Source: Macrostomum hystrix
Taxonomy: Eukaryota; Animalia; Platyhelminthes
Direction: 5' to 3'
NCBI GenBank assembly: GCA_950097015.1
Contig: CATNEN010000007.1
Location: 4,712,001-4,776,000, forward strand
DNA: 64,000 nucleotides
The stretch's first letter is position 1. The number at the start of each line of letters is the position of its first letter. The translations under genes were made by a program, and so were the position numbers. The notes beneath the pieces are model-generated. The model saw nothing but the letters and a program-made list of their open reading frames with translations. It searched no databases and was not told the origin of the DNA. Positions 32,501-64,000 of this stretch are shown in pieces.

Positions 32501-34076
32501 TGAGGAGACTCACAGAAATACCTAAGGTGACTCACTGAAATACCTAAGGTGACTCACAGAAATACCTAAGGTGACTCACTGAAATACCTAAGGTGACTCA
32601 CTGAAATACCTAAGGTGACTCACTGAAATACCTAAGGTGACTCACTGAAATACCTAAGGTGACTCACTGAAATACCTAAGGTGACTCACTGAAATACCTA
32701 AGGTGACTCACTGAAATACCTAAGGTGACTCACTGAAATACCTAAGGTGACTCACTGAAATACCTAAGGTGACTCACTGAAATACCTAAGGTGACTCACT
32801 GAAATACCTAAGGTGACTCACTAAATACCTAAGGTGACTCACAGAAATACCTAAGGTGACTCACTGAAATGCCTAAGGTGACTCACTGAAATACCTAAGG
32901 TGACTCACTGAAATGCCTAAGGTGACTCACTAAATACCTAAGGTGACTCACTAAATACCTAAGGTGACTCACTGAAATACCTAAGGTGACTCACTAAATA
33001 CCTAACGTAACTCACTGAGGGACCTGAGGAGACTCACGGAGGGACCTGAGGAGACTGACTGAGGGACCTGAGGAGACTGACTGAGGGACCTGAGGAGACT
33101 CACTGAGGGACCTGAAGAGACTGACTGAGGGACCTGAGGAGACTGACTGAGGGACCTGAGGAGACTGACTGAGGGACCTGAGGAGACTCACGGAGGGACC
33201 TGAAGAGACTGACTGAGGGACCTGAGGAGACTGACTGAGGGACCTGAGGAGACTGACTGAGGGACCTGAGGAGACTCACGGAGGGACCTGAGGAGACTGA
33301 CTGAGGGACCTGAGGAGACTGACTGAGGGACCTGAGGAGACTGACTGAGGGACCTGAAGAGACTGACTGAGGGACCTGAAGAGACTGACTGAAAACAAAG
33401 GTATAGAAGTCGAGACCCATTTCAACTGTGACAAAAAGCAATGAACAGAAGGCAATTCCTACTTCTCCAGGCTGGCCACTCGTTTCTCCGCCTGCAGGCG
33501 GTCGGCGGCGGCCTTGTCAAGCGCCAGCTGCAGGTCGGCTCTCTCGCCGGCCAGCCGGTCGAGCTGCTGGCGCAGACCGCCGATCTCGCGCTCGTAGAGC
33601 CCAGTGCTCTGGTTGACCTCCTGAGTAGTTGACTCGCTTAGCGACTCGTATTGTCGGCGAACAGTTTCAGCAGACTGCTGCTGGGAGCGGACGAATTCGA
33701 TGTAGCAGGCCAGGCGGGTGTTGAGATGGGCCAGCTCCTCCTTCTCCTGCTCGCGGGAGATCGCCAAGGGGCTGCGCGACCGGCGGCGACTGTTGGCGGA
33801 GGCCGACGCTGATGCTGAAGTCGACGCGGACGATACGCCCGCCGAGGCTACCGGGGTGCCAGTGAGCAGAGAGGTGACCTTCTTTGTCACCGTGGTTATG
33901 ACCGTGTCGCCATCCTGCTTCTGCAGCTGCTGATGGGCAACAGCTTCCTCCACGAGGTCCTGGTGCTCCTCGCTATGCTCAGTGACGATAACCTCCTCCT
34001 CGGTGAGCACAGACTGGGCCTGAGCCTCGGCGGCTTTCCGCTCTGTTTTGCGAGCCTTGACTTGCTTAGCTGACAT
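23505..34076 (-). CDS. LMN: Nuclear lamin (B-type, CaaX), 6 coding exons, 673 aa
   Basis: join(33463-34076, 32270-32474, 29620-29975, 28656-29259, 28230-28346, 23505-23630) = 2022 nt, all junctions GT-AG and phase-consistent. Motifs: CDK-type SP + coil 1A ([29 protein letters not shown]), [14 protein letters not shown] rod end ([18 protein letters not shown]), NLS-like KRQR, lamin tail Ig domain ([19 protein letters not shown]...GGWTL...VWTSDS...VVAWRK), C-terminal CCVM-stop. Confidence 0.95.
23655..24080. repeat. 23-bp minisatellite, left copy (duplicated target of the retroelement)
   Basis: GGGGCTTTTAGT followed by 18 units of GGGCTG[GC/AT/GT]ACATGGACTTTTAGT, in the last lamin intron. Confidence 0.95.
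24081..27070 (+). mobile_element. 5'-truncated non-LTR retrotransposon with RT, RNase H and CCHC domains (Loa/R1/I-group-like)
   Basis: Uninterrupted 962-aa ORF 24088-26976 containing [46 protein letters not shown] and YADD; RNase H FTDGS / SDSQAA / WIPGH..GNELAD; and CX2CX8HX4C. The 3' tail is TAAGTCAAGTAAGTCAAA. No endonuclease or ORF1 is present. The clade assignment is by recalled domain order only. Confidence 0.93.
27071..28165. repeat. 23-bp minisatellite, right (original) array
   Basis: Same unit as 23655-24080, degenerating towards 28165. Confidence 0.95.
28437..28615. repeat. 21-bp intronic repeat (ATCAAGGAAATGGAAGTGGAA)
   Basis: About 8 copies inside lamin intron 28347-28655. Confidence 0.9.
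30989..31967 (+). CDS. Secreted PAN/apple-like + C-type lectin domain protein (265 aa), nested antisense in lamin intron 2
   Basis: join(30989-31532, 31714-31967), phase-1 GT-AG intron containing a ~34-bp repeat. Hydrophobic N-terminus ([13 protein letters not shown]), PAN-like [25 protein letters not shown]-like [32 protein letters not shown]. Confidence 0.8.
32503..33392. repeat. Two abutting 22-bp arrays in lamin intron 1 (GACTCACTGAAATACCTAAGGT; GAGGGACCTGAGGAGACTGACT)
   Basis: First array ~32503-33010, second ~33013-33392. Confidence 0.95.
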
Positions 34077-34263
34077 TTGGCTGCTTGATTGGTGCCAGAA
34101 ATAGGCACAGTCTGGCACTGAAATAGTTCATTGAAAGGCACAAATTAGATGATGAGGCATTCAAGTACATTTGGCTGCTTGATTGGTGCCAGAAATAGGC
34201 ACAGTCTGGCACTGAAATAGTTCATTGAAAGGCACAAATTAGATGATGAGGCATTCAAGTACA
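34073..34263. repeat. Exact 94-bp tandem duplication covering the lamin start-codon context
   Basis: 34074-34169 is repeated at 34168-34263. Confidence 0.92.
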
Positions 34264-44098: not shown

Positions 44099-47000
44099 TA
44101 GGGTTTGCTATTACCGGTCCTTATCTCATTACCGGTAATTCGATAATATCTTTTTTATTTACCGGTAATTACCGGTAATTACCGGTAAACATGCAGTATT
44201 GCTATACTTTAATTCACTAAAAACGTCTTTGTTGCTCCCTTCTTAGAAAACATTAAAAAATTATGGTTGGGATGATAAGTGAGAATCGTAGGCATGTATA
44301 TTTGCACTATTCATTGCTCGAATTTCAATTTTTGTAGCCTTATAAAAAGTGTACCATATTTTCTTTAGACCGTATTCCTATCGCTGTAAATTGTAATATT
44401 TCACGTAAAGATCATTGCCATTAAAACTAACTCGGAGTCGAACCCATTCATTGATCCGCGACCGCCACTGTACTATATATAATTGAGATTTGAGCCTTTG
44501 AGACAGATACTTGTACAATTTTATTATAGTGGACAATGTGGTAGACTGGGAGTGGATTAAAATTGCGCAATAGTTTTGAACTGAATTCGCAAATTACTTT
44601 GAAATGTTCATGTTACAGCGCAGAAAGTTAAGGCAGTCAAGAGTGCTGTCCGAAAGTCGTGAACGCAGCCTTGTGCACAGATTGCCGGCAGTAGAAAATG
44701 CACGCTCCGACTCCACAGATGTAGGTGGTATGGTCAATAGCAGTTGGTAAACCTTGCTCATGTAGAAGCCTCGCTTGCCACTGTGTTCGGCCGCAGAGAG
44801 TTCGTTGAGGAGCACAGACGACAGGTCCTTCTGATGCATACTTTGAATTTCAGATTCAGGCAGCTTCATTGAGTCTTTGACTGCCTTCTGAAGTCTAAGT
44901 AGCACATCTGTGTCACTGACACTGTCAATGTCAACAGCACCATTTGGCGATGCCGATGGGACATCAGACCGCAGTTCAGTCGTCGCTGCAGCTAGCGCTT
45001 CATGGTCTATTTCATTTTCAACGACCAGGTTTAGTCTTGTAAGCAGAGAGCAGCAGTAGGTCTTGATTGATTGCTTTTTTGCCAGCCGTCTCTGTGGACT
45101 GTGCAAGTACTGAAGTACCACAGAATCGTTAGTATAGCGTTCTTGTACAATTCGCTGCTCGATTGCCAGTTTCAGATGTTTGCTTAGTTCAGACTTGTGC
45201 TTGTTGCTATCCATCTCTAGCTCGGTTATTAAAAATTTCACGACTGCTTCGGCCTCGATCAGATTTGAGTCCCTCCGAGACAGGGAAAGTACGGCAGCTT
45301 TCACAGGTTTTAGTGCGCGTACAACAGAAGCTACCACTTGGAAGTCGCTCTCACTTAGCCTGTCGCATGACCTAATGTTGACGTCAATCTGCGCTTTCTC
45401 AACACTCGCGCTAACTAGAAGGATGCGATCCAGCATGTCCACCAAGCTGTTCCATCTGGTCTTGCAATCCAAAATGAGTCGCCTGCAGGACACTTGGGGG
45501 ATCTGTTGTGCAATGTGGTTTTCCAGTATCTCTGAGCTCTTAGGAGACTTCCGAAAAACCCGAATCACGGATCTGACTTTTCTTATTGTTTCAGCAATTG
45601 AGCTCAGCGGTGTCACAGTCAAACAAGCAGCTGTAGACAGCATCGACTCCACGACGTCCGTTTCTTGTCCGTCATGATGATCAATTACAAGACCTTCGTT
45701 GAGATCACTGTCAGAATCTTCGTCGGAATCGTCCTCAACATTCACAATTGGATGGTGGTCCTCGCCGTCGGATCCTGAACTCGGTCCAATAGCGGCTCTC
45801 TGCACTGGAGTTACTTTCTCGTACAAAACGTCCAGTACAGCCAGTTGCAGTCCATGGCTGTAGCACAGCTGCTGTGAGATTGGAAGAATGAGCTGTCCAA
45901 CCTTCCGCATCATAGCGGCACCGTCTGTCGTGATGCAGACTATGTCTTGGGTCAAATTGAGTTCAAACTCAGTCAGCTTAGTGGACACCGCTTTTACACA
46001 ATTTTCTGCATTAAAGGTGCCGCTTACCCTTGACAGTCCTAGATTCCACAGCTTTTCACCGTCACGGATGTCGATATTCAAATACCGCACATTTCGGACC
46101 GACGTCCATTCATCAAATGTGAGGCTAAAGCGAGACCCGTTTTGCTTTCGCTGTAGTAGCTCTTTAGCTACATCGTTCTTCTTCTCACGGCCGTATTTCA
46201 ATACAAGTGACTTAATAGCGTTGGGTGACTTTGGCAGATCATGGCCGAGTGCAGCAAATGCTCGGCGCAAATCTTGCGAGGCTGCGAATGCCAGAAACGG
46301 CAATCCATGTCCTGCAGTCATGCGGGCCAACATCGCAGACATGGAAGTGTCGTTCTTGTTAGCAAAATAGCCAGTAATCGTATCTGCCAATAATAAGATT
46401 TAAAATATCACAGTGAGTAGTGGTACTAGTGGTGGGTAGTAGAGGTACATACTGATATACTGATACTGATGCTGATGCTGATGCTAATTTAACATGTATG
46501 ATGTAACTATTTATCAATTATTTTCCTCCCTAAATTTAGTTCATTAATCGCCCAGTATTGATTATAGAATGTAAAAAAGAGAAGTACTTACTTTTTGATG
46601 CCGATGGTGAAGCATAAGAAGACCCAACCACGTCAATGACAGTCTGGAGTCTAGCCATTTTTGTAGGGGGCTCGTTAACTTCCGCGATTGATTTCGGAAC
46701 CGTGGAAGTGGAATTGGCTTCTTTCTTGTGAATTCGCTTAAGGTGGCTCCGCAATCCACTGGTAGATCCACCTTCGCACTTTATGACTGCCTTACAGGCC
46801 GTACACTGTGCTGAAAGACCGTAGCGTTCGTTTTCCCATTCTCGCAAAAAATAGCTCCATATTTCGTTGTCGCTTCGAAACGGCTTGTACGTTTTCATTG
46901 AATGCGTGTTCTGTACTGTTAAAAATTATAATTGAAGTTATCTAGGCAGAGGCAGAGCCAAGCCAACTGAACAGAGTCACACTGACACTGAGCCAGAGCC

Positions 47001-47487
47001 AGACAAGAGGAGTGAACTGACTGCATGCATGTGCATGGCCACATATATTAGTAACAGAAGGGTAAGGCTTAAGGATTAAGGAATAAGGATAGGGAGGGCG
47101 GGGCCTGGGCCAGGCCAGGAGTAGGCCACACAGGCATGGGAATGTACATACATATGTACATGTATTCAGTATATTGCTCATCCCTTGGTTCCTTCCTTGG
47201 CTAATATGGCTATACCAGGCAATTTGAGCCCTTGAATTTTATCACTTATTTCTCCGCTTCTGAAGTCTCTCGAGTCTCTACACCCTGCAGTGAAGCGAAT
47301 GTGCATTAATTTCAATGACTGTCTGACCATTATTCATTTAATTTGTTTATGAATTAAGAGCTCAAATGTTTTTATTATGAAAACCGTTTACCGGTAATAC
47401 CGGTATATTTGCTTTAAAAAACCGGTATGAAAAAGCGGTCAATTACCGGTAAACCGGTTTACCGGTTTACCGGTAATGCAATCCCTA
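44099..47487 (-). mobile_element. Full-length hAT DNA transposon (3389 bp)
   Basis: Imperfect TIRs TAGGG[T/A]TTGC, 8-bp TSD ATCAGCCC (44091-44098 / 47488-47495), clustered subterminal TTACCGGT repeats at both ends. Confidence 0.93.
44594..46898 (-). CDS. hAT transposase with BED zinc finger, 698 aa, one intron
   Basis: join(46592-46898, 44594-46383), phase-1 GTAAGT..CAG intron. BED finger (IWSYF..AQCTAC..STSGLRSHL..IH), SLTFDEWTS, TTDGA, CYSH, TRWNS, PPTSVESERAFS. No stops or frameshifts seen. Confidence 0.92.
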
Positions 47488-49558
47488 ATCAGCCCTCCTT
47501 GTTCTGTTAGCTACAGAGGATCAGCCCTCCTTGTTCTGTTAGCTACAGAGGATCAGCCCTCCTGCTTCTGGTAGCTACAGAGGATCAGCCCTCCTTGTTT
47601 CTTGTAGCTACAGAGGATCAGCCCTCCTGCTTCTGGTAGCTACAGAGGATCAGCCCTCCTTGTTTCTGGTAGCTACAGAGGATCAGCCCTCCTGCTTCTG
47701 GTAGCTACAGAGGATCAGCCCTCCTTGTTTCTTGTAGCTACAGAGGATCAGCCCTCCTTGTTCGGTTAGCTACAGAGGATCAGCCCTCCTTGTTTCTGGT
47801 AGCTACAGAGGATCAGCCCCCCTTGTTCTGTTAGCTACAGAGGATCAGCCCCCCTTGTTCTGGTAGCTACAGAGGATCAGCCCCCCTTGTTCTGTTAGCT
47901 ACAGAGGATCAGCCCTCCTGTTTCTGTTAGCTACAGAGGATCAGCCCTCCTTGTTTCTGGTAGCTACAGAGGATCAGCCCCCCTTGTTCTGTTAGCTACA
48001 GAGGATCAGCCCTCCTGTTTCTGTTAGCTACAGAGGATCAGCCCTCCTTGTTCTGTTAGCTACAGAGGATCAGCCCTCCTTGTTCTGTTAGCTACAGAGG
48101 ATCAGCCCTCCTTGTTCTGTTAGCTACAGAGGATCAGCCCTCCTGCTTCTGGTAGCTACAGAGGATCAGCCCTCCTTGTTTCTTGTAGCTACAGAGGATC
48201 AGCCCTCCTGCTTCTGGTAGCTACAGAGGATCAGCCCTCCTTGTTTCTGGTAGCTACAGAGGATCAGCCCTCCTGCTTCTGGTAGCTACAGAGGATCAGC
48301 CCTCCTTGTTTCTTGTAGCTACAGAGGATCAGCCCTCCTTGTTCGGTTAGCTACAGAGGATCAGCCCTCCTTGTTTCTGGTAGCTACAGAGGATCAGCCC
48401 TCCTTGTTCTGTTAGCTACAGAGGATCAGCCCCCCTTGTTCTGTTAGCTACAGAGGATCAGCCCCCCTGTTTCTGGTAGCTACAGAGGATCAGCCCTCCT
48501 TGTTTCTGGTAGCTACAGAGGATCAGCCCCCCTTGTTCTGTTAGCTACAGAGGATCAGCCCTCCTTGTTTCTTGTAGCTACAGAGGATCAGCCCTCCTTG
48601 TTCGGTTAGCTACAGAGGATCAGCCCTCCTTGTTTCTGGTAGCTACAGAGGATCAGCCCCCCTTGTTCTGTTAGCTACAGAGGATCAGCCCCCCTTGTTC
48701 TGTTAGCTAGAGGATCAGCCCTCCTGTTTTTGGTAGCTACAGAGGATCAGCCCTCCTTGTTCTGTTAGCTACAGAGGATCAGCCCCCCTTGTTCTGTTAG
48801 CTAGAGGATCAGCCCTCCTGTTTTTGGTAGCTACAGAGGATCAGCCCTGCTGGTTCTGGTAGCTACACGGTATCCACCCTCCTGGTGGATAGCGAATAGC
48901 AAACGTAGTAGCCTAGTAGTTAGAGTGGTTGACTCACGACTTAAGGGTTAAGGGACTCACGGCATCGATTCCCGACTTCACTTGAACAATTGGAGTAATT
49001 GATTGATTAACAGTCTGGTTTAATGAAATATTGAAATAGCTGCGGCTGTGCTGTTGGCTGCTCATCTGGCCCAATTAGGGCAATGTGTAGTAAATTATTG
49101 TTTTATGTATTGAGGCGCACAAAAAGAAACAAAACTTTCAAATACGTGCCTGGAGGTATTATTATTAATTAATGCTTAATTATTCTAAGTGGCAGAATTT
49201 TTTACCCTGATTTTGAGACAACTTGCAGTCAAGCATCGACTTGGGGAAATTGTGCCCACCGAACAAAGTATTTCGTCAGCCCAACGTATACAGCACGTTA
49301 GATAGCGAAATCTCATGATTCCCAACTTTGCCCCATAGCGACGCCCACAAATGTGAACACGCATTCCCAAAGTTTTTTTGTTTACGACAAGCAGGGCTTC
49401 CCATAGCACGGGAAGGCATTCACATATCGAAATCTATGTGAGACCAGAGGCTCCCATTTCTGTGAGCACCAAGCAGCCACCCCAACCAATTGGGGTTAGT
49501 GTTAGGCTGCTGCGCTTATCGCTATGTGAAGCTCTGAAGAAACCAAAAATAGCTCGCC

Positions 49559-49583
49559 GTGTGCAGTCTCCGAAGGCTATAAA
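49559..49583 (+). promoter_or_regulatory. MRE core (TGCACAC, reverse strand) plus TATA box upstream of the 360-aa MT-like ORF
   Basis: GTGTGCA at 49559-49565 matches the TGCRCNC consensus. TATAAA at 49578-49583 lies ~110 nt before the ATG. Confidence 0.6.
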
Positions 49584-49689
49584 TGCAGCACACCTGAGGC
49601 ACCCAGGAAATCCTCAAGAAACTCGACCAAGCGATCCAGCTCGACAATCTAAAGCCAGAAATTAGCAACACAAGCCAACAAAGACGGTA

Positions 49690-50772
49690 ATGGAATCACA
49701 AGAGAAACCACAGTGCAAGTGCGACACCTGCGAATGCAAGAACTGCAAGTGCGAGACCTGCGAATGCAAGAACTGCAAGTGTGAGAACTGCAAATGCAAG
49801 AACTGCAAGTGCGAGACCTGCGAATGCAAGAACTGCAAGTGTGAGAACTGCGAATGCAAGAACTGCAAGTGCGAGAATTGCGAATGCAAGAACTGCAAGT
49901 GCGAGAACTGCGAATGCAAGAACTGCAAGTGCGAGACCTGCGAATGCAAGAACTGCAAGTGTGAGACCTGCGAATGCAAGAACTGCAAGTGCGAGACCTG
50001 CGAATGCAAGAACTGCAAGTGTGAGACCTGCGAATGCAAGAACTGCAAGTGCGAGAACTGCGAATGCAAGAACTGCAAGTGCGACACCTGCGAATGCAAG
50101 AACTGCAAGTGTGAGACCTGCGAATGCAAGAACTGCAAGTGCGAGACCTGCGAATGCAAGAACTGCAAGTGTGAGACCTGCGAATGCAAGAACTGCAAGT
50201 GCGAGAACTGCGAATGCAAGAACTGCAAGTGCGACACCTGCGAATGCAAGAACTGCAAGTGCGACACCTGCGAATGCAAGAACTGCAAGTGCGAGAACTG
50301 CGAATGCAAGAACTGCAAGTGCGAGAACTGCGAATGCAAGAACTGCAAGTGCGAGAACTGCGAATGCAAGAACTGCAAGTGCGAGAACTGCGAATGCGAG
50401 AACTGCAAGTGCGACACCTGCGAATGCAAGAACTGCAAGTGCGAGAACTGCGAATGCAAGAACTGCAAGTGCGACACCTGCGAATGCAAGAACTGCAAGT
50501 GCGAGAACTGCGAATGCAAGAACTGCAAGTGCGAGAACTGCGAATGCAAGAACTGCAAGTGCGAGAATTGCGAATGCAAGAACTGCAAGTGCGAGACCTG
50601 CGAATGCAAGAACTGCAAGTGCGAGAATTGCGAATGCAAGAACTGCAAGTGCGAGACCTGCGAATGCAAGAACTGCAAGTGCGAGACCTGCGAATGCAAG
50701 AACTGCAAGTGCGAGAACTGCGAATGCAAGAACTGCAAGTGCGAGACCGGTGAATGCAAGAACTGCAAGTGA
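49690..50772 (+). CDS. Long repeat-built metallothionein-like protein A, copy 1 (360 aa, ~140 Cys)
   Basis: ATG, an 8-aa leader, then 35 units of CKC[E/D][T/N]CECKN. The 30-bp unit has no indels. No aromatic or hydrophobic residues and no signal peptide. Upstream MRE+TATA and downstream AATAAA (51032). Confidence 0.8.
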   Translation: MESQEKPQCKCDTCECKNCKCETCECKNCKCENCKCKNCKCETCECKNCKCENCECKNCKCENCECKNCKCENCECKNCKCETCECKNCKCETCECKNCKCETCECKNCKCETCECKNCKCENCECKNCKCDTCECKNCKCETCECKNCKCETCECKNCKCETCECKNCKCENCECKNCKCDTCECKNCKCDTCECKNCKCENCECKNCKCENCECKNCKCENCECKNCKCENCECENCKCDTCECKNCKCENCECKNCKCDTCECKNCKCENCECKNCKCENCECKNCKCENCECKNCKCETCECKNCKCENCECKNCKCETCECKNCKCETCECKNCKCENCECKNCKCETGECKNCK

Positions 50773-51504
50773 AAGAACTTCAAAGTCAGGTGCTGCTTTA
50801 TAGTTGGCAAAAGCAATGAGAAGTTTTCTCATTTGCTGCAAAGCATATGCTCGTACATATATTCCGCCAATTTACCAAGACGATTTGAGGGACTATAAGC
50901 TTTCTCAAAATTGTGTTCACTTTATGTTGATTGCTTATTAAAATTCGGACACTGAAGCCATTGGTTTTCTTATTTTTTAATCAGAGAAAATTGCTCTTAT
51001 CAAACGTACCTACTATGTTTGTACCGGAAATAATAAAATTTTTGAGCTGGTGTTGATTATTTTATAATATTTTCCTTCTGCCGATCCTGCTTTGATACGC
51101 AAATATTCACGCTGTAAAATTGTCATTATGCCCGTACAAACAGAACTTAAAACAAACAGTTTAAGTACATTTAATGTAATATGAAGCGACATTATTAAAA
51201 CAAAAAAATGAAAAGCTAATGAATTGATTCAATTGAGTAGATAGGTAAGCTGGCAAGCTTAAACACACCATCGGAAATGGATTCGCCTCAATCTAATGAA
51301 ATGTAAGAAAGAAAAGAAATCAACTGGAAACTGTACGAAAACTGGCATTTTAACTTCTAAATATAAAATTCGAAAATCTATATATTCTAAATCTTATATA
51401 CTAAAAATGAAAATATCAACTAAAAAGATAATCATGCGCTTCCACTGAATATATCCTGAAGGAATCCTGAAAGTATCATATCAGAGATAACCCCCCTTGA
51501 GGAT

Positions 51505-52610
51505 ATTATCCGACTGAAGATTTCCTACTGAAGATATCCCGCAGAAGATATCCCACTGAAGAACTGAACATTATCCCACTGAAGATATCCCGCAGAAGAT
51601 ATCCCACTGAAGAACTGAACATTATCCCACTGAAGATATCCCGCAGAAGATATCCCACTGAAGAACTGAACATTATCCCACTGAAGATATCCCGCAGAAG
51701 ATATCCCACTGAAGAACTGAACATTATCCCACTGAAGATACCCTACTGAAGATATCCCACTGAAGAAATCCTACTGAAGATATCCTGCTGAACATATCAT
51801 ACAGAGGCTATCCAGAAGATATCCTATGAGGCTATCCAGAAGATATCCTATGAGGCTATCCTGAAGATAATCCTATGTGGCTATCCAGAAGATATCCCAT
51901 GTGGCTATCCTGAAGATATCCTATGTGGCTATCCTGAAGATATCCTATGAGGCTATCCAGAAGATATCCTACGTGGCTATCCTGAAGATATCCTATGAGG
52001 CTATCCTGAAGATATCCTATGAGGCTATCCTGAAGATATCCTATGTGGCTATCCAGAAGATATCCTATGAGGCTATCCTGAAGATATCCTATGAGGCTAT
52101 CCTGAAGATATCCTATGAGGCTATCCTGAAGATATCCTATGAGGCTATCCTGAAGATATCCTATGAGGCTATCCTGAAGATAATCCTATGTGGCTATCCA
52201 GAAGATATCCTATGAGGCTATCCTGAAGATATCCTATGAGGCTATCCTGAAGATATCCTATGTGGCTATCCTGAAGATATCCTATGTGGCTATCCTGAAG
52301 ATATCCTATGTGGCTATCCTGAAGATATCCCATGTGGATATCCTGAAGATATCCCATGTGGCTATCCTGAAGATATCCTATGTGGCTATCCTGAAGATAT
52401 CCTATGTGGCTATCCTGAAGATATCCCATGTGGCTATCCTGAAGATATCCTATGTGGCTATCCAGAAGATATCCTATGAGGCTATCCTGAAGATAATCCT
52501 ATGTGGCTATCCAGAAGATATCCTATGAGGCTATCCTGAAGATATCCTATGAGGCTATCCTGAAGATATCCTATGTGGCTATCCTGAAGATATCCTATGT
52601 GGCTATCCTA
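51505..52610. repeat. Intergenic GAAGATATCC-based repeats: 51-bp x4, then a 24-bp array (GAAGATATCCTATG[T/A]GGCTATCC[T/A])
   Basis: Tandem copies lying between the two MT-like genes. Confidence 0.92.
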
Positions 52611-53120
52611 TGGAAGAAACCCAGCTGAAATGACACTGAAGACATCCGAAAAGGAACATATTTTACCCGGCTGAAGAGTGTAGTCGTCCTGAAGGAATCA
52701 GCTGGGATTCATTCATCATGAATCTTAACTCAAGTTATCATTTGCGAGCTATCCAATAGATACACGCATTGACTTACGAGTCCTTTTTCATGAAGCTTGT
52801 TGGTGTTTTAATATCTCATTGCGTCGATAGCAAACCAGTTTTTGCATACTCGAGCCCGCTCACATTGCCGCTCATGCAGAAAACCCCATTTATGTGAATC
52901 CGCATTCCCATCAAAGCTTGTACCAAGGCGATAAGCAGAAAGCGACTCCCATATTTTGGGAGCGCCCCGAGTTCTATGTGAGTCCAAACTGGGTTACAGC
53001 TTCAAACCAATTTGCAGCAGGTTTATGTGAAGCCTACCAGTCCTTATCGCATACTGACGGCGTGCCAAAGCCAAGAAACCATGACGGTGACCGGCACACA
53101 CCTCCTATTCAATTTTTCAC

Positions 53121-53126
53121 TATAAA
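53121..53126 (+). promoter_or_regulatory. TATA box candidate for the 818-aa MT-like ORF
   Basis: TATAAA 110 nt upstream of the ATG, a spacing very similar to gene A. No perfect MRE was seen nearby (only GGCACAC at ~53094). Confidence 0.45.
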
Positions 53127-53230
53127 GCTTAGCGGCTCCATGACATGCCAGAGCAAGCACTTAACAGGCTCTGTATAATCTATCTATTTTTCACCTTGCT
53201 AACACTCCTACAGCCACTGCAGCAACTATC

Positions 53231-55687
53231 ATGGAAATGGGTGACTGTGAAAAGTGCAAGAGCAACACATGCGGGTGCCGTGAATGCAAGTGCGAGAGCT
53301 GCAGTTGTAAGGACGGAGACTGCAAGGACTGCAAGTGTACTGACTGCAAGTGTACTGACTGCAAGTGCACCGACTGCAAGTGTACTGACAGCAAGTGCAC
53401 CGACTGCAAGTGCACTGACTGCAAGTGTTCCGACTGCAAGTGTACCGACTGCAAGTGTACCGATTGCAAGTGTACCGACTGCAAATGTACTGACTGCAAG
53501 TGTACCGACTGCAAGTGCACCGACTGCAAGTGTACCGACTGCAAGTGCACCGACTGCAAGTGCACCGACTGCAAGTGTACCGACTGCAAGTGCACCGACT
53601 GCAAGTGTACCGACTGCAAATGTACTGACTGCAAGTGCACCGACTGCAAGTGTACCGACTGCAAGTGTACCGACTGCAAGTGCACCGACTGCAAGTGCAC
53701 CGACTGCAAGTGTACCGACTCCAAGTGTGACACCCGCAAGTGCCGTGAATGCAAGTGCGAGAGCTGCAGTTGCAAAGACGGAGACTGCAAAGACTGCAAG
53801 TGCACCGACTGCAAGTGCACTGACTGCAAGTGTTCCGACTGCAAGTGTACCGACTGCAAGTGTACCGACTGCAAGTGCACCGACTGCAAGTGTACCGACT
53901 GCAAGTGTACCGACTGCAAGTGCACCGACTGCAAGTGCACCGACTGCAAGTGTACCGACTCCAAGTGTGACACCCGCAAGTGCCGTGAATGCAAGTGCGA
54001 GAGCTGCAGTTGCAAAGACGGAGACTGCAAAGACTGCAAGTGCACCGACTGCAAGTGCACTGACTGCAAGTGTTCCGACTGCAAGTGTACCGACTGCAAG
54101 TGTACCGACTGCAAGTGCACCGACTGCAAGTGCACCGACTGCAAGTGCACCGACTGCAAGTGTACCGACTGCAAGTGCACCGACTGCAAGTGTACCGACT
54201 GCAAATGTACTGACTGCAAGTGCACCGACTGCAAGTGTACCGACTGCAAGTGCACCGACTGCAAGTGCACCGACTGCAAGTGCACCGACTGCAAGTGCAC
54301 CGACTGCAAGTGTACCGACTGCAAGTGCACCGACTGCAAGTGTACCGACTGCAAATGTACCGACTGCAAGTGCACCGACTGCAAGTGTACCGACTGCAAA
54401 TGTACTGACTGCAAGTGCACCGACTGCAAGTGTACCGACTGCAAGTGTACCGACTGCAAGTGCACCGACTGCAAGTGCACCGACTGCAAGTGTACCGACT
54501 CCAAGTGTGACACCCGCAAGTGCCGTGAATGCAAGTGCGAGAGCTGCAGTTGCAAAGACGGAGACTGCAAAGACTGCAAGTGCACCGACTGCAAGTGCAC
54601 CGACTGCAAGTGCACTGACTGCAAGTGTTCCGACTGCAAGTGTACCGACTGCAAGTGTACCGACTGCAAGTGCACCGACTGCAAGTGTACCGACTGCAAG
54701 TGTACCGACTGCAAGTGCACCGACTGCAAGTGCACCGACTGCAAGTGTACCGACTCCAAGTGTGACACCCGCAAGTGCCGTGAATGCAAGTGCGAGAGCT
54801 GCAGTTGCAAAGACGGAGACTGCAAAGACTGCAAGTGCACCGACTGCAAGTGCACCGACTGCAAGTGTACCGACTGCAAGTGCACCGACTGCAAGTGCAC
54901 CGACTGCAAGTGCACCGACTGCAAGTGCACCGACTGCAAGTGTACCGACTGCAAGTGCACCGACTGCAAGTGTACCGACTGCAAATGTACCGACTGCAAG
55001 TGCACCGACTGCAAGTGTACCGACTGCAAATGTACTGACTGCAAGTGCACCGACTGCAAGTGTACCGACTGCAAGTGTACCGACTGCAAGTGCACCGACT
55101 GCAAGTGCACCGACTGCAAGTGTACCGACTCCAAGTGTGACACCCGCAAGTGCCGTGAATGCAAGTGCGAGAGCTGCAGTTGCAAAGACGGAGACTGCAA
55201 AGACTGCAAGTGCACCGACTGCAAGTGCACCGACTGCAAGTGCACTGACTGCAAGTGTTCCGACTGCAAGTGTACCGACTGCAAGTGTACCGACTGCAAG
55301 TGCACCGACTGCAAGTGCACCGATTGCAAGTGTACCGACTGCAAGTGCACCGACTGCAAGTGCACCGACTGCAAGTGTACCGACTGCAAGTGCTCCGACT
55401 GCAAGTGTACCGACTGCAAGTGTACCGACTGCAAGTGTACCGACTGCAAGTGTACTGACAGCAAGTGCACCGACTGCAAGTGTGACACCCGCAAGTGCCG
55501 TGAATGCAAGTGCGAGAGCTGCAGTTGCAAAGACGGAGACTGCAAAGACTGCAAGTGTTCCGACTGCAAGTGCTCCGACTGCAAGTGTACCGACTGCAAG
55601 TGTACCGACTGCAAGTGTACTGACAGCAAGTGCAATGACTGTAAGTGTGACACCTGCAAGTGCCGTGAATGCAAGTGCGAGAGCTGA
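53231..55687 (+). CDS. Giant modular metallothionein-like protein B (818 aa, ~40% Cys)
   Basis: Single ORF of (CKCTD)n interrupted by a CRECKCESCSCKDGDCKD module. The 15-bp unit has no indels and its variation is mostly synonymous. Only M,E,G,D,C,K,S,N,T,R are used. AATAAA at 56132. Confidence 0.8.
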   Translation: MEMGDCEKCKSNTCGCRECKCESCSCKDGDCKDCKCTDCKCTDCKCTDCKCTDSKCTDCKCTDCKCSDCKCTDCKCTDCKCTDCKCTDCKCTDCKCTDCKCTDCKCTDCKCTDCKCTDCKCTDCKCTDCKCTDCKCTDCKCTDCKCTDCKCTDCKCTDCKCTDSKCDTRKCRECKCESCSCKDGDCKDCKCTDCKCTDCKCSDCKCTDCKCTDCKCTDCKCTDCKCTDCKCTDCKCTDCKCTDSKCDTRKCRECKCESCSCKDGDCKDCKCTDCKCTDCKCSDCKCTDCKCTDCKCTDCKCTDCKCTDCKCTDCKCTDCKCTDCKCTDCKCTDCKCTDCKCTDCKCTDCKCTDCKCTDCKCTDCKCTDCKCTDCKCTDCKCTDCKCTDCKCTDCKCTDCKCTDCKCTDCKCTDCKCTDCKCTDSKCDTRKCRECKCESCSCKDGDCKDCKCTDCKCTDCKCTDCKCSDCKCTDCKCTDCKCTDCKCTDCKCTDCKCTDCKCTDCKCTDSKCDTRKCRECKCESCSCKDGDCKDCKCTDCKCTDCKCTDCKCTDCKCTDCKCTDCKCTDCKCTDCKCTDCKCTDCKCTDCKCTDCKCTDCKCTDCKCTDCKCTDCKCTDCKCTDCKCTDCKCTDSKCDTRKCRECKCESCSCKDGDCKDCKCTDCKCTDCKCTDCKCSDCKCTDCKCTDCKCTDCKCTDCKCTDCKCTDCKCTDCKCTDCKCSDCKCTDCKCTDCKCTDCKCTDSKCTDCKCDTRKCRECKCESCSCKDGDCKDCKCSDCKCSDCKCTDCKCTDCKCTDSKCNDCKCDTCKCRECKCES

Positions 55688-57491
55688 AGTTGCAAAGGAC
55701 GGAGACTGCAAAGACTGCAAGTGTTCCGACTGCAAGTGCTCCGACTGCAGGTGTGACACCTGCAAATTATAGTTCGAGAGCTGCGAGTGCGAGGACGTAG
55801 CCTGCATGCAATGATGGCATTAAAGGCTAAAGATAGCTATCACAAGTGCAATTCTAGAACTGACAGAAAATTTCGAAGTGGAAGAAACCTCGGTCTAACA
55901 TTATTTTGATTTACAATCAGCCATTAAGTGCTTTTTACGTTCATTTTTGAGGGAATAATATCTAATTTGAGTTACATAATATGCTGCATTGATTTGACTT
56001 CTTTATATTTTGCTGCTGTTGATTTTACTCGTACTTTCTTATTTATAGTTCACGTCCTTGCTTGATTTCGCAGCCATCTCCACTTTCAAGTTTGATTGCT
56101 TAAGACAGAGTGCACATTTCCAATTTTTTTAAATAAACGTTAATTTGAAGCTAGCTTCTAAATGGACTTCGGAAACGCGATGAGACACATGCAGATATTG
56201 TTAAGAACTTGGCAACGGCAAGCTTGCGGCCTTAGGCCTAACAACTTATAAGATTTATAAAAACCGCCATTTTGGAGTTAGATGAAATTGAGTCAAAATC
56301 AGTACAACAGAATCGTATACAATTTATCAATGTAATTGCTTAATGGATTATCGTAATTAATTGCTGACGATACATATAAATTTACTGAAACTGTGGCCGA
56401 TTGCAAGCTAATCCATTGTGCGACAGCTGTGGCAGCTCATAGCGAAGTACACAGTGTTGTAACGTTTTGAACAAAGGAACATACAGTTTTATTTGAAAAA
56501 ACTGTTCCGACGAGCAAGACAACTATGTGGTCGGCGACCGTTAAAATGCAGCGTGGTACAAACCGAAATTTTGTGCTCTTTAAAACCTGGAAATCGATAC
56601 AAAAAGCTGGAATTGACAGCGGCTGCACGCTGCACTGCAGTCATTTATATGTTGTATTGTATGTGTTTTCTCAATGAGTTCTCGGTCACCCCGCCCAGAT
56701 GAGTTTAAGAAAGTAGAACCACATAGTGAAGTTTTCTATACTATTTTAATAATATATAGGAGCTGCTCTGATCTGCTCTGCAGCCCTCAACAACCCAGAC
56801 TAGAGAATATTATATGTTTAACGACAACTTGCGTGTGAAAGCCACAAACCTTGGCTGGATCATCTCAAGCATCCTTAGAGACTTTCTGCAAACCTTTATA
56901 CAACGTGCCGAACACTGGGTGTGTATAGCTTTGCTTTCTTCTAAAATCGTTAATTCCAAAAACCGTAGATCGCTGCAAATAGTAGTCATCTTCGACAGCA
57001 GACGAAACAGTGTAAACACTGTAAAGCATCGAGTCACTGCTTCCGGAATCAAACCTAATAACCTTTAGGAAGCAAACCTAGATGTTATCCTTGATCATAT
57101 GTTACACTCGAAACAAAATCACCAAATCTCTTACGACGCTGTCGAATCTGCAAAGAAAATAATTTACGATAGAATCTCGGACTTGCGATAACTAAGTATT
57201 TTAACTAACAAATATACATACATGCTTTTGGGTCCTACAAGCATAAAATTGTCTGACAATTTTTTATGTAAATAACATTAATTGAAAAAATTCCGACTGG
57301 CAAAATAGTGCTTTTAAGCTATTTTGACTTAACAGGAACCTGAAAAAAAGTCTAAAAAGTTTTCTTGATTTATAAGTAACTTATTAGGCCCCTACTACTA
57401 AATAATTAAGCGTTGTGGTTCAGCAACAAGCGTATACGTTTTCCTGTCGTATTTAATATTAAATGTTAAATGTACTGTCATTTATAGACTA

Positions 57492-58135
57492 GGGTAATGT
57501 ATCATCAACCAAACAAGAATGTGTATTTTTTTAACTTCAAACCTAAGCTACAGATTTTCTATTTTAGATATCATGATAAATCAAAAGCCAAGTTATAGAA
57601 AACAGTTACATCTTTCTAAAAAGTATCTGCTTTTGCTAATTTATCAAATATAAAAAAAGTTATTCCTGCTTTTTATCTAAAACCGAACAATGATTTTCAT
57701 GTATCTTCAAACCAAACAGAGAATTTGATGTTTGGTTTTACAATTTGAGTGAGTGGTTTAATCTTATTTTAAGGATGGAACTATCATGAATTATGTAATT
57801 TGAAAGCATTTTTCATGCTCTATAAATAACTACATTTATGGTCATTTAATTGGTAAGCAACCACATACAATCTTCATCTAAAGTACATACTGAAAAAATG
57901 TTGTTAAAAAGTATGCTTTTGCAATAAAAATTTCTACTGAATCATCAATATCTTTCTTTCCTCTTAATGCTTCATTGCACATCATGCCTCAGCTTGTAGA
58001 TAATTTCTTCAACTTTCAAATTAGTTGTTCTGTGAAACACAATAGCTTGTTTCTATCTTGCACGAGACCAAGGAAGAAGAAAAAAATTCTTGTTTGGTTT
58101 TGAAGATACACTGTTCGGTTGATGATACATTACCC
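57492..58135. mobile_element. Putative MITE with GGGTAATGTATCATCAACC TIRs flanked by TA
   Basis: Inverted terminal repeats at 57492 and 58135, TA on both sides, internal copies of GTATC[A/T]TCAA..CCAAACA in both orientations, AT-rich non-coding interior. Confidence 0.6.
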
Positions 58136-59250
58136 TATACCAAAGCCGTTTGATAACAACTTTAGCTTTGTACAAGCAAGCAAGATTTTCATTTTTAGTA
58201 TATTTTGTATGTAATAGGCCTAGGCCCTATTGACACCTACACTATTTAGATGACTTACCTACTGACTTAACCTTGTTACACTTTTTCTGCGTCTACATAA
58301 ATTGCGATAATAATATATGCCACTATTGACACACCATTATGCCTCAAGGAGTCTAGGGTGTATGCCTAGACATACTAAATAGCTAAATGGTCCCTAGGCT
58401 ACCCTACACAATGCACTGCACTTACACACTAGGCCTAGTCTACATTAGGCCATGTTATAGATGCTTGGCTTAAATACACAGTGGACTTTTATAACTAACT
58501 AGGCCTACTGGAAATTCTGCCTACTGTTTTATTAAGTATAAGTAATGAAACTTCTTTATAGTAAAACTATAAACAATTACTAACACAACCAATGGCAACA
58601 AGCTACTCAGATGGCATAGTAGTGTGCCACCCATTAAATAATTTTGCAAAATGTAACAAGGCAAGAATAAATCATATTTTTCTCCCAGTCCCTCCTGCCC
58701 TTTCTCTTCTCTCTTTCTCTTTGGTTTTGACCATGGACATGGCCATGCAGTGCCATGTTGTTTAAAAAACTTGTGTAATTTCAAGTCTTTAACAAAGCAA
58801 GTTTGTTGTCTTTCAAAAATGCAAAAATTTCAGAATAACATATGTGCAAAGCTAGAGGATTGCCAGTCTACTATACATATATAGCCAGCAAGTTTTATAT
58901 ACATATTTTCATATAATACATAAAATATTTCTTAAATACTTAGTTGTTTTTTTGATTTGGGTGTTTTTCAGTTGAATTATTTTCAAAACCTGAAAATGCT
59001 ACTTTTTATGATTAGCCATTCCAAAAAAATATAAATTCAAAGAATATCAATCATTGAAATTATTTAGGCTTTTTACTTTTTATACTATTATTTAATATTT
59101 TCTTATCAATCATTGACATAATTTATTACTTTTTTAGTTATTTAAAGCATAAGTACAAACCATTTATAAAATGATTTTTTCTTATACGAGTTTTCTCGTT
59201 CTTTCTCTTGTAGACTATAATATACTCATAGCTATGGTTATCCTAGTTTA

Positions 59251-61609
59251 TTTCTGGTAGCTACAGAGGATCAGCCCTCCTGTTTCTGGTAGCTACAGAG
59301 GATCAGCCCTCCTGTTTCTGTTAGCTACAGAGGATCAGCCCTCCTTGTTCTGTTAGCTACAGAGGATCAGCCCTCCTTGTTCTGTTAGCTACAGAGGATC
59401 AGCCCTCCTGCTTCTGGTAGCTACAGAGGATCAGCCCTCCTTGTTTCTTGTAGCTACAGAGGATCAGCCCTCCTGTTTCTGGTAGCTACAGAGGATCAGC
59501 CCTCCTGTTTCTGGTAGCTACAGAGGATCAGCCCCCCTGTTTCTGGTAGCTACAGAGTATCAGCCCCCCTTGTTCTGTTAGCTACAGAGGATCAGCCCTC
59601 CTTGTTCTGGTAGCTACAGAGGATCAGCCCCCCTTGTTCTGTTAGCTACAGAGGATCAGCCCTCCTGTTTCTGGTAGCTACAGAGGATCAGCCCTCCTGT
59701 TTCTGGTAGCTACAGAGGATCAGCCCTCCTGTTTCTGGTAGCTACAGAGGATCAGCCCTCCTGTTTCTGGTAGCTACAGAGGATCAGCCCCCCCTGTTTC
59801 TGGTAGCTACAGAGTATCAGCCCCCCTTGTTCTGTTAGCTACAGAGGATCAGCCCTCCTGTTTCTGGTAGCTACAGAGGATCAGCCCTCCTGTTTCTGGT
59901 AGCTACAGAGGATCAGCCCTCCTGTTTCTGGTAGCTACAGAGGATCAGCCCTCCTGTTTCTGGTAGCTACAGAGGATCAGCCCTCCTTGTTTCTTGTAGC
60001 TACAGAGGATCAGCCCTCCTTGTTCGGTTAGCTACAGAGGATCAGCCCTCCTTGTTTCTGGTAGCTACAGAGGATCAGCCCCCCTTGTTCTGTTAGCTAC
60101 AGAGGATCAGCCCTCCTGTTTCTGTTAGCTACAGAGGATCAGCCCTCCTTGTTTCTGGTAGCTACAGAGGATCAGCCCCCCTTGTTCTGTTAGCTACAGA
60201 GGATCAGCCCTCCTGTTTCTGTTAGCTACAGAGGATCAGCCCTCCTTGTTCTGTTAGCTACAGAGGATCAGCCCTCCTTGTTCTGTTAGCTACAGAGGAT
60301 CAGCCCTCCTGCTTCTGGTAGCTACAGAGGATCAGCCCTCCTTGTTTCTTGTAGCTACAGAGGATCAGCCCTCCTGCTTCTGGTAGCTACAGAGGATCAG
60401 CCCTCCTTGTTTCTGGTAGCTACAGAGGATCAGCCCTCCTGCTTCTGGTAGCTACAGAGGATCAGCCCTCCTTGTTTCTTGTAGCTACAGAGGATCAGCC
60501 CTCCTTGTTCGGTTAGCTACAGAGGATCAGCCCTCCTTGTTTCTGGTAGCTACAGAGGATCAGCCCCCCTTGTTCTGTTAGCTACAGAGGATCAGCCCCC
60601 CTTGTTCTGGTAGCTACAGAGGATCAGCCCCCCTTGTTCTGTTAGCTACAGAGGATCAGCCCTCCTGTTTCTGTTAGCTACAGAGGATCAGCCCTCCTTG
60701 TTTCTGGTAGCTACAGAGGATCAGCCCCCCTTGTTCTGTTAGCTACAGAGGATCAGCCCTCCTGTTTCTGTTAGCTACAGAGGATCAGCCCTCCTTGTTC
60801 TGTTAGCTACAGAGGATCAGCCCTCCTTGTTCTGTTAGCTACAGAGGATCAGCCCTCCTTGTTCTGTTAGCTACAGAGGATCAGCCCTCCTGCTTCTGGT
60901 AGCTACAGAGGATCAGCCCTCCTTGTTTCTTGTAGCTACAGAGGATCAGCCCTCCTGCTTCTGGTAGCTACAGAGGATCAGCCCTCCTTGTTTCTGGTAG
61001 CTACAGAGGATCAGCCCTCCTGCTTCTGGTAGCTACAGAGGATCAGCCCTCCTTGTTTCTTGTAGCTACAGAGGATCAGCCCTCCTTGTTCGGTTAGCTA
61101 CAGAGGATCAGCCCTCCTTGTTTCTGGTAGCTACAGAGGATCAGCCCTCCTTGTTCTGTTAGCTACAGAGGATCAGCCCCCCTTGTTCTGTTAGCTACAG
61201 AGGATCAGCCCCCCTGTTTCTGGTAGCTACAGAGGATCAGCCCTCCTTGTTTCTGGTAGCTACAGAGGATCAGCCCCCCTTGTTCTGTTAGCTACAGAGG
61301 ATCAGCCCTCCTTGTTTCTTGTAGCTACAGAGGATCAGCCCTCCTTGTTCGGTTAGCTACAGAGGATCAGCCCTCCTTGTTTCTGGTAGCTACAGAGGAT
61401 CAGCCCCCCTTGTTCTGTTAGCTACAGAGGATCAGCCCCCCTTGTTCTGTTAGCTAGAGGATCAGCCCTCCTGTTTTTGGTAGCTACAGAGGATCAGCCC
61501 TCCTTGTTCTGTTAGCTACAGAGGATCAGCCCCCCTTGTTCTGTTAGCTAGAGGATCAGCCCTCCTGTTTTTGGTAGCTACAGAGGATCAGCCCTGCTGG
61601 TTCTGGTAG
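59251..61609. repeat. 32-34-bp minisatellite, duplicated copy with an empty hAT site at 60235-60242
   Basis: Same unit and variant order as the array at 43107-48862 minus the transposon. Confidence 0.95.
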
Positions 61610-62305: not shown

Positions 62306-62330
62306 GTGTGCAGTCTCCGAAGGCTATAAA
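62306..62330 (+). promoter_or_regulatory. MRE core plus TATA box, duplicated copy
   Basis: GTGTGCA at 62306-62312 and TATAAA at 62325-62330. Confidence 0.6.
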
Positions 62331-62436: not shown

Positions 62437-63519
62437 ATGGAATCACAAGAGAAACCACAGTGCAAGTGCGACACCTGCGAATGCAAGAACTGCAAGTGCG
62501 AGACCTGCGAATGCAAGAACTGCAAGTGTGAGAACTGCAAATGCAAGAACTGCAAGTGCGAGACCTGCGAATGCAAGAACTGCAAGTGTGAGAACTGCGA
62601 ATGCAAGAACTGCAAGTGCGAGAATTGCGAATGCAAGAACTGCAAGTGCGAGAACTGCGAATGCAAGAACTGCAAGTGCGAGACCTGCGAATGCAAGAAC
62701 TGCAAGTGTGAGACCTGCGAATGCAAGAACTGCAAGTGCGAGACCTGCGAATGCAAGAACTGCAAGTGTGAGACCTGCGAATGCAAGAACTGCAAGTGCG
62801 AGAACTGCGAATGCAAGAACTGCAAGTGCGACACCTGCGAATGCAAGAACTGCAAGTGTGAGACCTGCGAATGCAAGAACTGCAAGTGCGAGACCTGCGA
62901 ATGCAAGAACTGCAAGTGTGAGACCTGCGAATGCAAGAACTGCAAGTGCGAGAACTGCGAATGCAAGAACTGCAAGTGCGACACCTGCGAATGCAAGAAC
63001 TGCAAGTGCGACACCTGCGAATGCAAGAACTGCAAGTGCGAGAACTGCGAATGCAAGAACTGCAAGTGCGAGAACTGCGAATGCAAGAACTGCAAGTGCG
63101 AGAACTGCGAATGCAAGAACTGCAAGTGCGAGAACTGCGAATGCGAGAACTGCAAGTGCGACACCTGCGAATGCAAGAACTGCAAGTGCGAGAACTGCGA
63201 ATGCAAGAACTGCAAGTGCGACACCTGCGAATGCAAGAACTGCAAGTGCGAGAACTGCGAATGCAAGAACTGCAAGTGCGAGAACTGCGAATGCAAGAAC
63301 TGCAAGTGCGAGAATTGCGAATGCAAGAACTGCAAGTGCGAGACCTGCGAATGCAAGAACTGCAAGTGCGAGAATTGCGAATGCAAGAACTGCAAGTGCG
63401 AGACCTGCGAATGCAAGAACTGCAAGTGCGAGACCTGCGAATGCAAGAACTGCAAGTGCGAGAACTGCGAATGCAAGAACTGCAAGTGCGAGACCGGTGA
63501 ATGCAAGAACTGCAAGTGA
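62437..63519 (+). CDS. Long repeat-built metallothionein-like protein A, copy 2 (360 aa)
   Basis: Translation identical to 49690-50772 in the ORF track. Confidence 0.8.
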   Translation: MESQEKPQCKCDTCECKNCKCETCECKNCKCENCKCKNCKCETCECKNCKCENCECKNCKCENCECKNCKCENCECKNCKCETCECKNCKCETCECKNCKCETCECKNCKCETCECKNCKCENCECKNCKCDTCECKNCKCETCECKNCKCETCECKNCKCETCECKNCKCENCECKNCKCDTCECKNCKCDTCECKNCKCENCECKNCKCENCECKNCKCENCECKNCKCENCECENCKCDTCECKNCKCENCECKNCKCDTCECKNCKCENCECKNCKCENCECKNCKCENCECKNCKCETCECKNCKCENCECKNCKCETCECKNCKCETCECKNCKCENCECKNCKCETGECKNCK

Positions 63520-64000
63520 AAGAACTTCAAAGTCAGGTGCTGCTTTATAGTTGGCAAAAGCAATGAGAAGTTTTCTCATTTGCTGCAAAGCATATGCTCG
63601 TACATATATTCCGCCAATTTACCAAGACGATTTGAGGGACTATAAGCTTTCTCAAAATTGTGTTCACTTTATGTTGATTGCTTATTAAAATTCGGACACT
63701 GAAGCCATTGGTTTTCTTATTTTTTAATCAGAGAAAATTGCTCTTATCAAACGTACCTACTATGTTTGTACCGGAAATAATAAAATTTTTGAGCTGGTGT
63801 TGATTATTTTATAATATTTTCCTTCTGCCGATCCTGCTTTGATACGCAAATATTCACGCTGTAAAATTGTCATTATGCCCGTACAAACAGAACTTAAAAC
63901 AAACAGTTTAAGTACATTTAATGTAATATGAAGCGACATTATTAAAACAAAAAAATGAAAAGCTAATGAATTGATTCAATTGAGTAGATAGGTAAGCTGG

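Follow-up and report, generated by a model that had tools for sequence, protein, structure and literature searches.

The described proteins closest to the one presented here are large or multi-modular metallothioneins. OdiMT2 of Oikopleura dioica is made of 399 aa, 123 of them Cys, arranged in 65-aa repeat units whose number varies from 3 to 7 between populations; its binding of Zn and Cd has been shown and, large and multi-modular as it is, it is nevertheless accepted as a metallothionein (PMC8283569). Its unit of ~65 aa is a structured one (t-12C and 12C domains), its gene has introns and its Cys content is 31%. The subfamily 7b copper thioneins of Tetrahymena, MTT2 and MTT4, are built on the elementary motif CKCXXCKC (PMC1808422); they are ciliate proteins of ~100 aa, whose spacers differ in length. 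In the metallothioneins of snails (Alinda biplicata, Littorina) and in TmMT of Tremella mesenterica, metal capacity has grown by multiplication, within one polypeptide, of whole ~30-aa 3-metal domains, which belong to a recognisable metallothionein family. There also exist intracellular structural proteins with pentapeptide repeats and ~35-40% Cys, namely the ultra-high-sulfur keratin-associated proteins of the KAP5 type, in which CC doublets accompanied by Pro, Ser and Gly form disulfide matrices.

A literature search for metallothioneins of Macrostomum or of other flatworms returned nothing specific, and no characterised flatworm metallothionein was found; metallothionein is named once only in a 2026 review of the ecotoxicology of planarians, and the supplements of the Macrostomum hystrix genome paper do not mention it (PMC10468722). 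The locus described below lies in a 64,000-nt stretch of M. hystrix DNA (hereafter the window, whose numbering is used throughout) and contains two neighbouring Cys-coding arrays, genes A and B. With moderate confidence, we consider gene A to be a real gene without introns, transcribed from the + strand, which codes for a metallothionein-like metal sink, is paired with gene B and is regulated via sequence blocks common to the two promoters.

Gene A and its predicted product

Gene A (49690-50772, + strand) consists of 360 codons and a TGA. Eight unique residues precede an array (49714-50771, + strand) of 35.3 units of 30 bp, with 95% matches and zero indels according to Tandem Repeats Finder, so that the 360 aa and the 35 tandem units announced by the original prediction are borne out. 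Each 30-bp unit is composed of two diverged 15-bp half-units, both coding for CxCxx and identical at 11 of their 15 bases. The consensus CKC[ED][TN]CECKN is found in 32 of the 35 full units, the exceptions being unit 3 (CKCENCKCKN), unit 23 (CKCENCECEN) and unit 35 (CKCETGECKN). The initiator codon is in a gGTAATGG context, i.e. with G at -3 and +4, and the stop codon results from a TGC-to-TGA change within the last, degenerate unit.

The composition of the predicted product is very restricted (140 C, 72 K, 66 E, 51 N, 19 T and 6 D). Apart from the initiator Met, aromatic and hydrophobic residues and His are absent, as are Pro, Gly and Ser of the matrix type, and the protein has neither a signal peptide nor a hydrophobic stretch. 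About 40% of the residues are charged and the net charge is zero (72 K versus 72 D+E), with Lys adjoining Cys. The high Cys content of a metallothionein (here 38.9%, 140/360) is present, and so is its motif pattern, with 70 CxC pairs regularly spaced as CxCxx and neither CC nor F, W, Y or H; a low molecular weight, also typical of metallothioneins, is not, the protein being 360 aa long. The word ‘giant’, previously used for it, holds for its Cys, which are more numerous than those of OdiMT2, but not for its length, which is below the 399 aa of the latter.

The likeness to OdiMT2 lies in the type of architecture: a very large animal metallothionein, made of tandem Cys-rich units in an array of variable copy number. 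The differences are that gene A is intronless, has a 10-aa (2 × 5) unit repeated 35 times and 39% Cys, and that its metal binding is a predicted one; there is no sequence similarity between the two. The predicted protein resembles the Tetrahymena 7b thioneins in its CxC pairs, which are two residues apart, in having Lys beside Cys and in the virtual absence of CC or CCC. Gene B polymerises the CKCXXCKC motif in pure form, and gene A alternates CKC with CEC. Any likeness to these ciliate proteins is convergent, and a copper preference of gene A, which they could bring to mind, would be an analogy only. Ciliate contamination as the source of gene A was discarded, since the gene is on a 13.5-Mb animal contig with a lamin gene ~20 kb away. 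Module multiplication within a single polypeptide is what gene A would have in common with the snail metallothioneins and TmMT, but the module is here a pentad or decad instead of a whole domain, and no Pfam metallothionein family matches it. Gene A would belong with the multi-modular metallothioneins.

The KAP5-type proteins raise the question of another function for a protein that would be real. It could be an intracellular matrix cross-linked by disulfides, for instance as part of the copulatory stylet or of sperm or egg structures, or else a thiol redox sink. Macrostomum does make hard intracellular structures, structural proteins with a comparable Cys content and pentapeptide repeats are on record, and the gene is lineage-specific and fast-evolving, as reproductive genes often are. 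The composition goes the other way: unlike KAP5-type proteins, where CC doublets go with Pro, Ser and Gly, gene A has CxC only, associated with Lys, Glu and Asn, and the strict CxC spacing, the Lys beside Cys, the abundance of charged residues and their exact balance fit a soluble thionein of the CKCXXCKC type better. We therefore regard a matrix or redox protein as unlikely.

Relatives were sought in several ways. Word-index protein searches gave none for the whole of gene A, for its first 70 residues or for the 60 N-terminal residues of gene B. When 1.84 billion representatives were searched exhaustively with HMMER, 697 matches had E values of 0.001 or less; those inspected, 14 in number, are periodic, low-complexity sequences with 15-54% identity, and no CxCxx protein rich in K, E and N is among these 14. 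One of them (P0134) is an unrelated protein whose tail is acidic and made of CxCxx. No usable match came from the ESM Atlas, and an exact-sequence contig look-up had nothing on record. Within Pfam, gene A matches none of the metallothionein families, the sole hit at E up to 1 being PF25296 (see below), and PF00131 has no match in the M. hystrix genome.

A neighbouring paralogue and a tandem duplication

Gene B (53231-55689, + strand) has 818 codons, 303 of them for Cys, and is mostly (DCKCT)n, interrupted by a spacer that recurs. Its end is due to a TGC-to-TGA change combined with a 1-base insertion, after which ~28 decayed repeat codons can be recognised. Its layout is that of gene A: a TATAAA box (53122-53127) stands 109 nt ahead of the ATG, and both genes start with ATGGAA and make use of the word TGCAAGTGC (CKC). 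The local alignment of the two promoters scores 77.5, against 32.1 ± 6.0 for 500 dinucleotide shuffles, none of which reaches the observed value (the best is at 51.5), and against 19-30 for control alignments of the promoter with 13 other unique segments of the window. The promoters are thus homologous, which, with the common start and word, upholds the relationship between A and B that had been proposed earlier.

The relationship does not extend to the 3' side, where no similarity between the 3'UTRs of A and B was detectable by blastn. The arrays are uniform internally (95% in gene A), far more so than the diverged flanks. Uniform arrays next to diverged flanks, together with the unlike 3'UTRs, make it plausible that the present expansions of A and B occurred independently. 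The earlier proposal of one ancestor expanded twice is accordingly retained, with independence as its plausible part. As a scenario, A and B would be a lineage-specific pair derived from a single ancestral Cys-rich gene, and unequal exchange of 15- or 30-bp units would have made each array grow and would now keep it uniform.

The A-B pair is itself duplicated. A second, identical copy of the gene A ORF, not remarked in the original prediction, is found at 62437-63519 (+ strand), with its own core resembling a metal response element (MRE) at 62306-62312, and the stretch from 60235 to the window end at 64000 reproduces 47488-51253 with 100% identity. When the downstream genome was added, blastn gave 99.991% identity over 11,764 bp between 47489-59252 and 60236-71998; the first duplication unit, which bears A and B in the + orientation, is therefore 47489-59252, and the second starts at 60236 and extends beyond the window end. 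The order of the locus is A-B-A-B and repeats every 12,747 bp, the gene B copies being at C7:4765231 and 4777978 in contig coordinates; the flanks of gene A have no more than two copies in the genome. The identity begins exactly at the start of a 32-bp minisatellite upstream of copy 1, which points to unequal exchange between that array and the longer minisatellite upstream of copy 2, in the middle of which the identity begins on the other side. On this ground, the pair would have been tandemly duplicated very recently, after the growth of the arrays, probably through an exchange involving the 32-bp minisatellites that flank it. The assembly, Machtx_v2, is the polished output of Canu on PacBio reads of the inbred line SR1 (PMC10468722), and a 12.7-kb duplication so close to perfect could also be an artefact of long-read assembly with this program.

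The surroundings are rich in repeats, ~51% of the window being minisatellite (tandem repeat). Its other features are an ORF for reverse transcriptase and RNase H (24.0-27.0 kb), the lamin/intermediate-filament gene (28.4-34.1 kb, - strand) and a hAT transposase (44.6-46.9 kb, - strand).

Coding nature and probable transcription of the array

In such a setting, gene A could be a non-coding minisatellite: its array would be one among the many 30-bp arrays of this genome, open in every frame by construction, and any transcripts would then be noise. The open frame is indeed weak evidence, because the five other frames across the array are open too, over 189-384 codons. The genome contains other arrays that read (CxCxx)n by construction, such as (CDCRF)n over 355 aa, (CVCLS)n over 689 aa, (CACDG)n and (CQCEW)n, some of them with a preceding Met, so that the base rate of Cys-periodic pseudo-ORFs is not negligible; for annotation, this genome is a warning that minisatellites can yield such ORFs by chance. 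The Pfam hit is no help either. The PF25296 ‘Decapeptide’ profile is above cut-off at at least 150 places in the genome, where it fires on unrelated 30-bp arrays whose translations are unrelated 10-aa repeats (e.g. GGCQTEDLRQ or PMIFQCVGSH), and homology of gene A to this ‘Decapeptide repeat region’ was rejected as unspecific. That none of the protein searches gave a homologue of gene A also goes in the direction of a minisatellite.

Five observations oppose it. The first is that gene-like flanks are common to gene A and to a second Cys-coding array made of a different unit. Second, the A and B promoters are conserved amid diverged surroundings. The third is the nature of the variation between units, to be read with the caution that array variants, in A as in B, are not independent events. 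Among 125 core units of gene B, the variants fall 12, 2 and 91 times at codon positions 1, 2 and 3 of the Cys frame; 91 of the 105 are synonymous in exactly that frame, versus 12 and 2 in the other two. In gene A, three of the four polymorphic sites are at third positions and the Cys are unaltered in 34 of the 35 units, the exception being the terminal one; its codon-position signal is weak when taken alone (about P = 0.1). Fourth, all non-Cys positions of gene A are hydrophilic, whereas the chance arrays carry F, W, V or L. The fifth, contig depth, is given below. All in all, a non-coding array appears to us rather improbable. The original prediction of a metallothionein-like gene looks real with respect to the gene; the metallothionein-like function is a predicted one.

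Contigs from four public runs were placed on the 49300-51300 region. X3 to X6 are 2020 runs from one study, with ~45 Mb of contigs each. The M. hystrix data of 2020 are the stranded RNA-seq of Brand et al., while the DNA data of the genome paper itself are from 2023 (PMC10468722, Table S1); given this match in date, X3 to X6 are probably RNA runs. Short-read contigs from X3 and X4 tile the gene A array, all with a match of at least 99%. Downstream of it, a probable 3'UTR (50773-51066, + strand), which has two genomic copies only, contains an AATAAA (51032-51037) 260 nt past the TGA, and a 348-nt contig of X3 corresponds exactly to 50719-51066, i.e. ends 29 nt past the AATAAA. None of the four runs has a contig on 51067-51300. 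Coverage is uneven elsewhere: X4 has no contig on the 3'UTR, neither X3 nor X4 has one on 49628-49728, and a low-depth contig of X4 (49453-49627) spans the TATA box.

Contig depth was divided by the genomic copy number of the 31-mers, to give a depth per copy. It was 4.7-9.4 for the gene body versus 1.3 for the upstream flank in X3, and 4.9-22.6 versus 1.2-1.5 in X4, i.e. 4 to 15 times more over the gene body than over the promoter flank in these two probable RNA runs, where uniform DNA would have given equal values; as contigs prove neither RNA ends nor strand nor level, and as the RNA nature of the runs is deduced from their date, we conclude that gene A is probably transcribed, at a moderate level. 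The enrichment over the ORF and 3'UTR, and its stop after the AATAAA, are not what a non-coding minisatellite would be expected to give. One more contig, from X1 (49632-49743), covers the 5'UTR and the first unit and begins immediately downstream of an AG; it gives no more than a lead towards a trans-splice acceptor at 49631/49632, contigs being unable to show RNA ends.

Predicted function and promoter sequences

As predicted from its composition, the gene A product would be a soluble, signal-less and charge-balanced polymer of 70 Cys-x-Cys-x-x pentads which, in the manner of metallothioneins, would buffer or sequester metal through its thiolates with a very high capacity. If the mammalian stoichiometry of 20 Cys for 7 M(II) applied, its 140 Cys would accommodate ~45-50 divalent ions, and more of Cu(I); the Lys beside the Cys would offset the charge of the clusters. 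Should A and B prove to bind metal, they would count among the first metallothionein candidates of the phylum and be the most extreme case of modular metallothionein growth, with a unit of 5 or 10 residues repeated from 35 to ~160 times; they would then allow a natural test of the extent to which thiolate clusters can be polymerised. A broader reading, possible though doubtful in our eyes, would make them the metal-handling metallothioneins of a lineage devoid of the classical kinds, in which near-homopolymeric CxCxx chains would hold tens of metal ions each, previously undescribed cis-elements (three TATGTGAR motifs and ATGTGAAYMCGCATTCCCA) would co-regulate the two genes in replacement of MTF-1 and the MRE, and copy number would control dosage, which could evolve fast through the number of units and the 12.7-kb tandem duplication.

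The promoter of gene A has a TATAAA box at 49578-49583 (+ strand), 112 nt ahead of the ATG, with no other ATG between 49585 and 49689. By local alignment and MAFFT, the stretch homologous to the gene B promoter (52862-53082) was delimited as 49325-49546 (+ strand). Its distal part contains a conserved 19-nt block, ATGTGAAYMCGCATTCCCA (49351-49369, + strand), detected by blastn and present in gene B at 52892-52910; in the whole 220-Mb genome, exact matches to it are found in the four A and B promoters only, and there are 4 matches when 2 mismatches are allowed, which is near the reversed-pattern control (2). Then come two inverted TATGTGAR motifs (49419-49426, - strand, and 49435-49442, + strand), the second of which is positionally kept at 52975 in gene B and belongs to a collinear block (49433-49446 in A, 52973-52986 in B). 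The next collinear block, of 8 nt (49484-49491 in A, 53005-53012 in B), corresponds to a CCAAT box, CCAATTGG in gene A (49486-49493, both strands; 92 nt ahead of the TATAAA) and CCAAT at 53006-53010 in gene B. The last one is 100% identical in the two genes (49523-49532 in A, 53024-53033 in B) and includes the third TATGTGAR motif of gene A, TATGTGAA (49523-49530, + strand), 55 nt ahead of the TATAAA. The 64-kb window has nine TATGTGAR matches, and all of them are in the promoter of gene B or of one of the two copies of gene A.

Because four collinear blocks have been kept in both promoters, co-regulation of A and B is likelier than the different regulation that had been suggested for them. 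Judging from their distribution in the sequence, the TATGTGAR motifs, three per promoter, are better regulatory candidates than the MRE; regulation would be exerted mainly by the blocks common with B, i.e. these motifs, the 19-nt block and the CCAAT box, and not by the single MRE-like core. RNAi and in situ hybridisation are established in Macrostomum, and transgenesis in M. lignano, so that the promoter blocks could serve to probe directly how metal or stress genes are regulated outside the MTF-1 paradigm.

The MRE-like core is a TGCACAC read on the - strand (TGCACACGGCGA) at 49559-49565. The original prediction had it next to the TATA box of gene A and had found no perfect core in gene B; both statements are correct, save that the gap to the TATAAA is of 12 nt instead of 13. 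MTF-1-driven promoters usually contain several MREs. A TGCRCNC core near a TATA box is present here as one copy, which is the sole core within ~3 kb upstream of gene A. The motif is not enriched but under-represented in the window, with 22 matches versus 60.7 ± 7.1 in shuffled sequences, and the probability of encountering one match by chance within 100-300 bp of a TATA box is roughly 3-25%. Neither is the core conserved: it sits just 3' of the stretch common to A and B, which ends at 49546, and the B sequence that aligns with it is not an MRE, the only related sequence nearby being a GGCACAC. The MRE therefore looks like a chance match, as the earlier caution about a 7-bp motif had allowed for, and the weight that had been given to it is not supported.

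Control of gene A by MTF-1, with an orthologue of this factor binding the TGCACAC and with A but not B being metal-inducible, is for us very unlikely: besides the single, non-enriched and non-conserved core, a literature search found no paper on MTF-1 in flatworms. What such control has in its favour is the perfection of the core, its plausible distance to the TATAAA and the imperfect sequence of gene B. The extended MRE consensus is TGCRCNCGGCCC; on its own strand the core continues with GGC, and it fits this consensus at 10 of 12 positions.

Promoters and ends of genes A and B

The promoters of the metallothionein-like gene A (49325-49546) and of its paralogue, gene B (52862-53082), each carry three TATGTGAR motifs, two of which occupy positions conserved between the two promoters. 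In the gene A promoter, an inverted pair (49419-49442) is made up of two of these motifs, separated by 8 nt. All nine matches to TATGTGAR found in the 64-kb window lie in A and B promoters; the motif is a candidate for a new cis-element.

Downstream of the gene A promoter, the contig from X1, a public sequencing run, has its first base at 49632, immediately 3' of an AG, and a low-depth contig from a second public run, X4, has its last base at 49627. Going by contig ends, which are no proof of RNA ends, the interval 49628-49632 may hold either a spliced-leader acceptor or the TSS region. At the other extremity of the pair, gene B terminates through a TGC-to-TGA change and a one-base insertion within a spacer unit, and about 28 more repeat codons, in a different frame, follow the stop as decayed 3' sequence (the whole end region spans 55680-55772).

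The two 11.8-kb units of the A-B duplication (47489-59252 and 60236-71998, the second running past the window end) differ solely by a small indel near 58086 (versus 70833) and are elsewhere identical, several minisatellites included. Either the copying happened very recently or the second unit is an artefact of the assembly.

Cysteine-periodic arrays and the Decapeptide profile

Translated minisatellite repeats of the types (CDCRF)n (contig C31, 2208000-2211500), (CVCLS)n (C38, 306000-311000) and (CACDG)n (a pair on C1, 2055500-2058500 and 2073500-2076500) are present in the M. hystrix genome, with a cysteine share of 24-39%. In the two (CACDG)n arrays, a Met immediately precedes the repeats, whose residues (C, A, D, G) give them an MT-like composition. 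P0134, a 212-aa protein from a public collection, ends in an acidic (CxCxx)n tail (CDCEDCDCED...) and is an independent instance of the CxCxx cysteine spacing seen in gene A; its unrelated N-terminal part, judged by eye, may be phosphopantetheinyl-transferase-like.

In a whole-genome profile search, the Pfam 'Decapeptide' profile (PF25296) exceeded its curated cut-off at no fewer than 150 unrelated translated 30-bp minisatellites. A match to it in this genome is a signal of periodicity, not of homology.

Other genes and mobile elements

A hAT-type transposon (44159-47474), with a BED finger (46539-46925) and a hAT dimerisation domain (44597-46399), both on the minus strand, is bordered by TTACCGGTAA palindromic repeats (44159-44188 and 47443-47474) and flanked on each side by an array of one common 32-bp minisatellite. 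Several minisatellites also lie inside introns of a lamin/intermediate-filament gene (28431-34127, minus strand) with Filament and Lamin Tail Domain exons. On the plus strand, a retroelement open frame of 980 codons (24034-26973) contains reverse transcriptase and RNase H domains.
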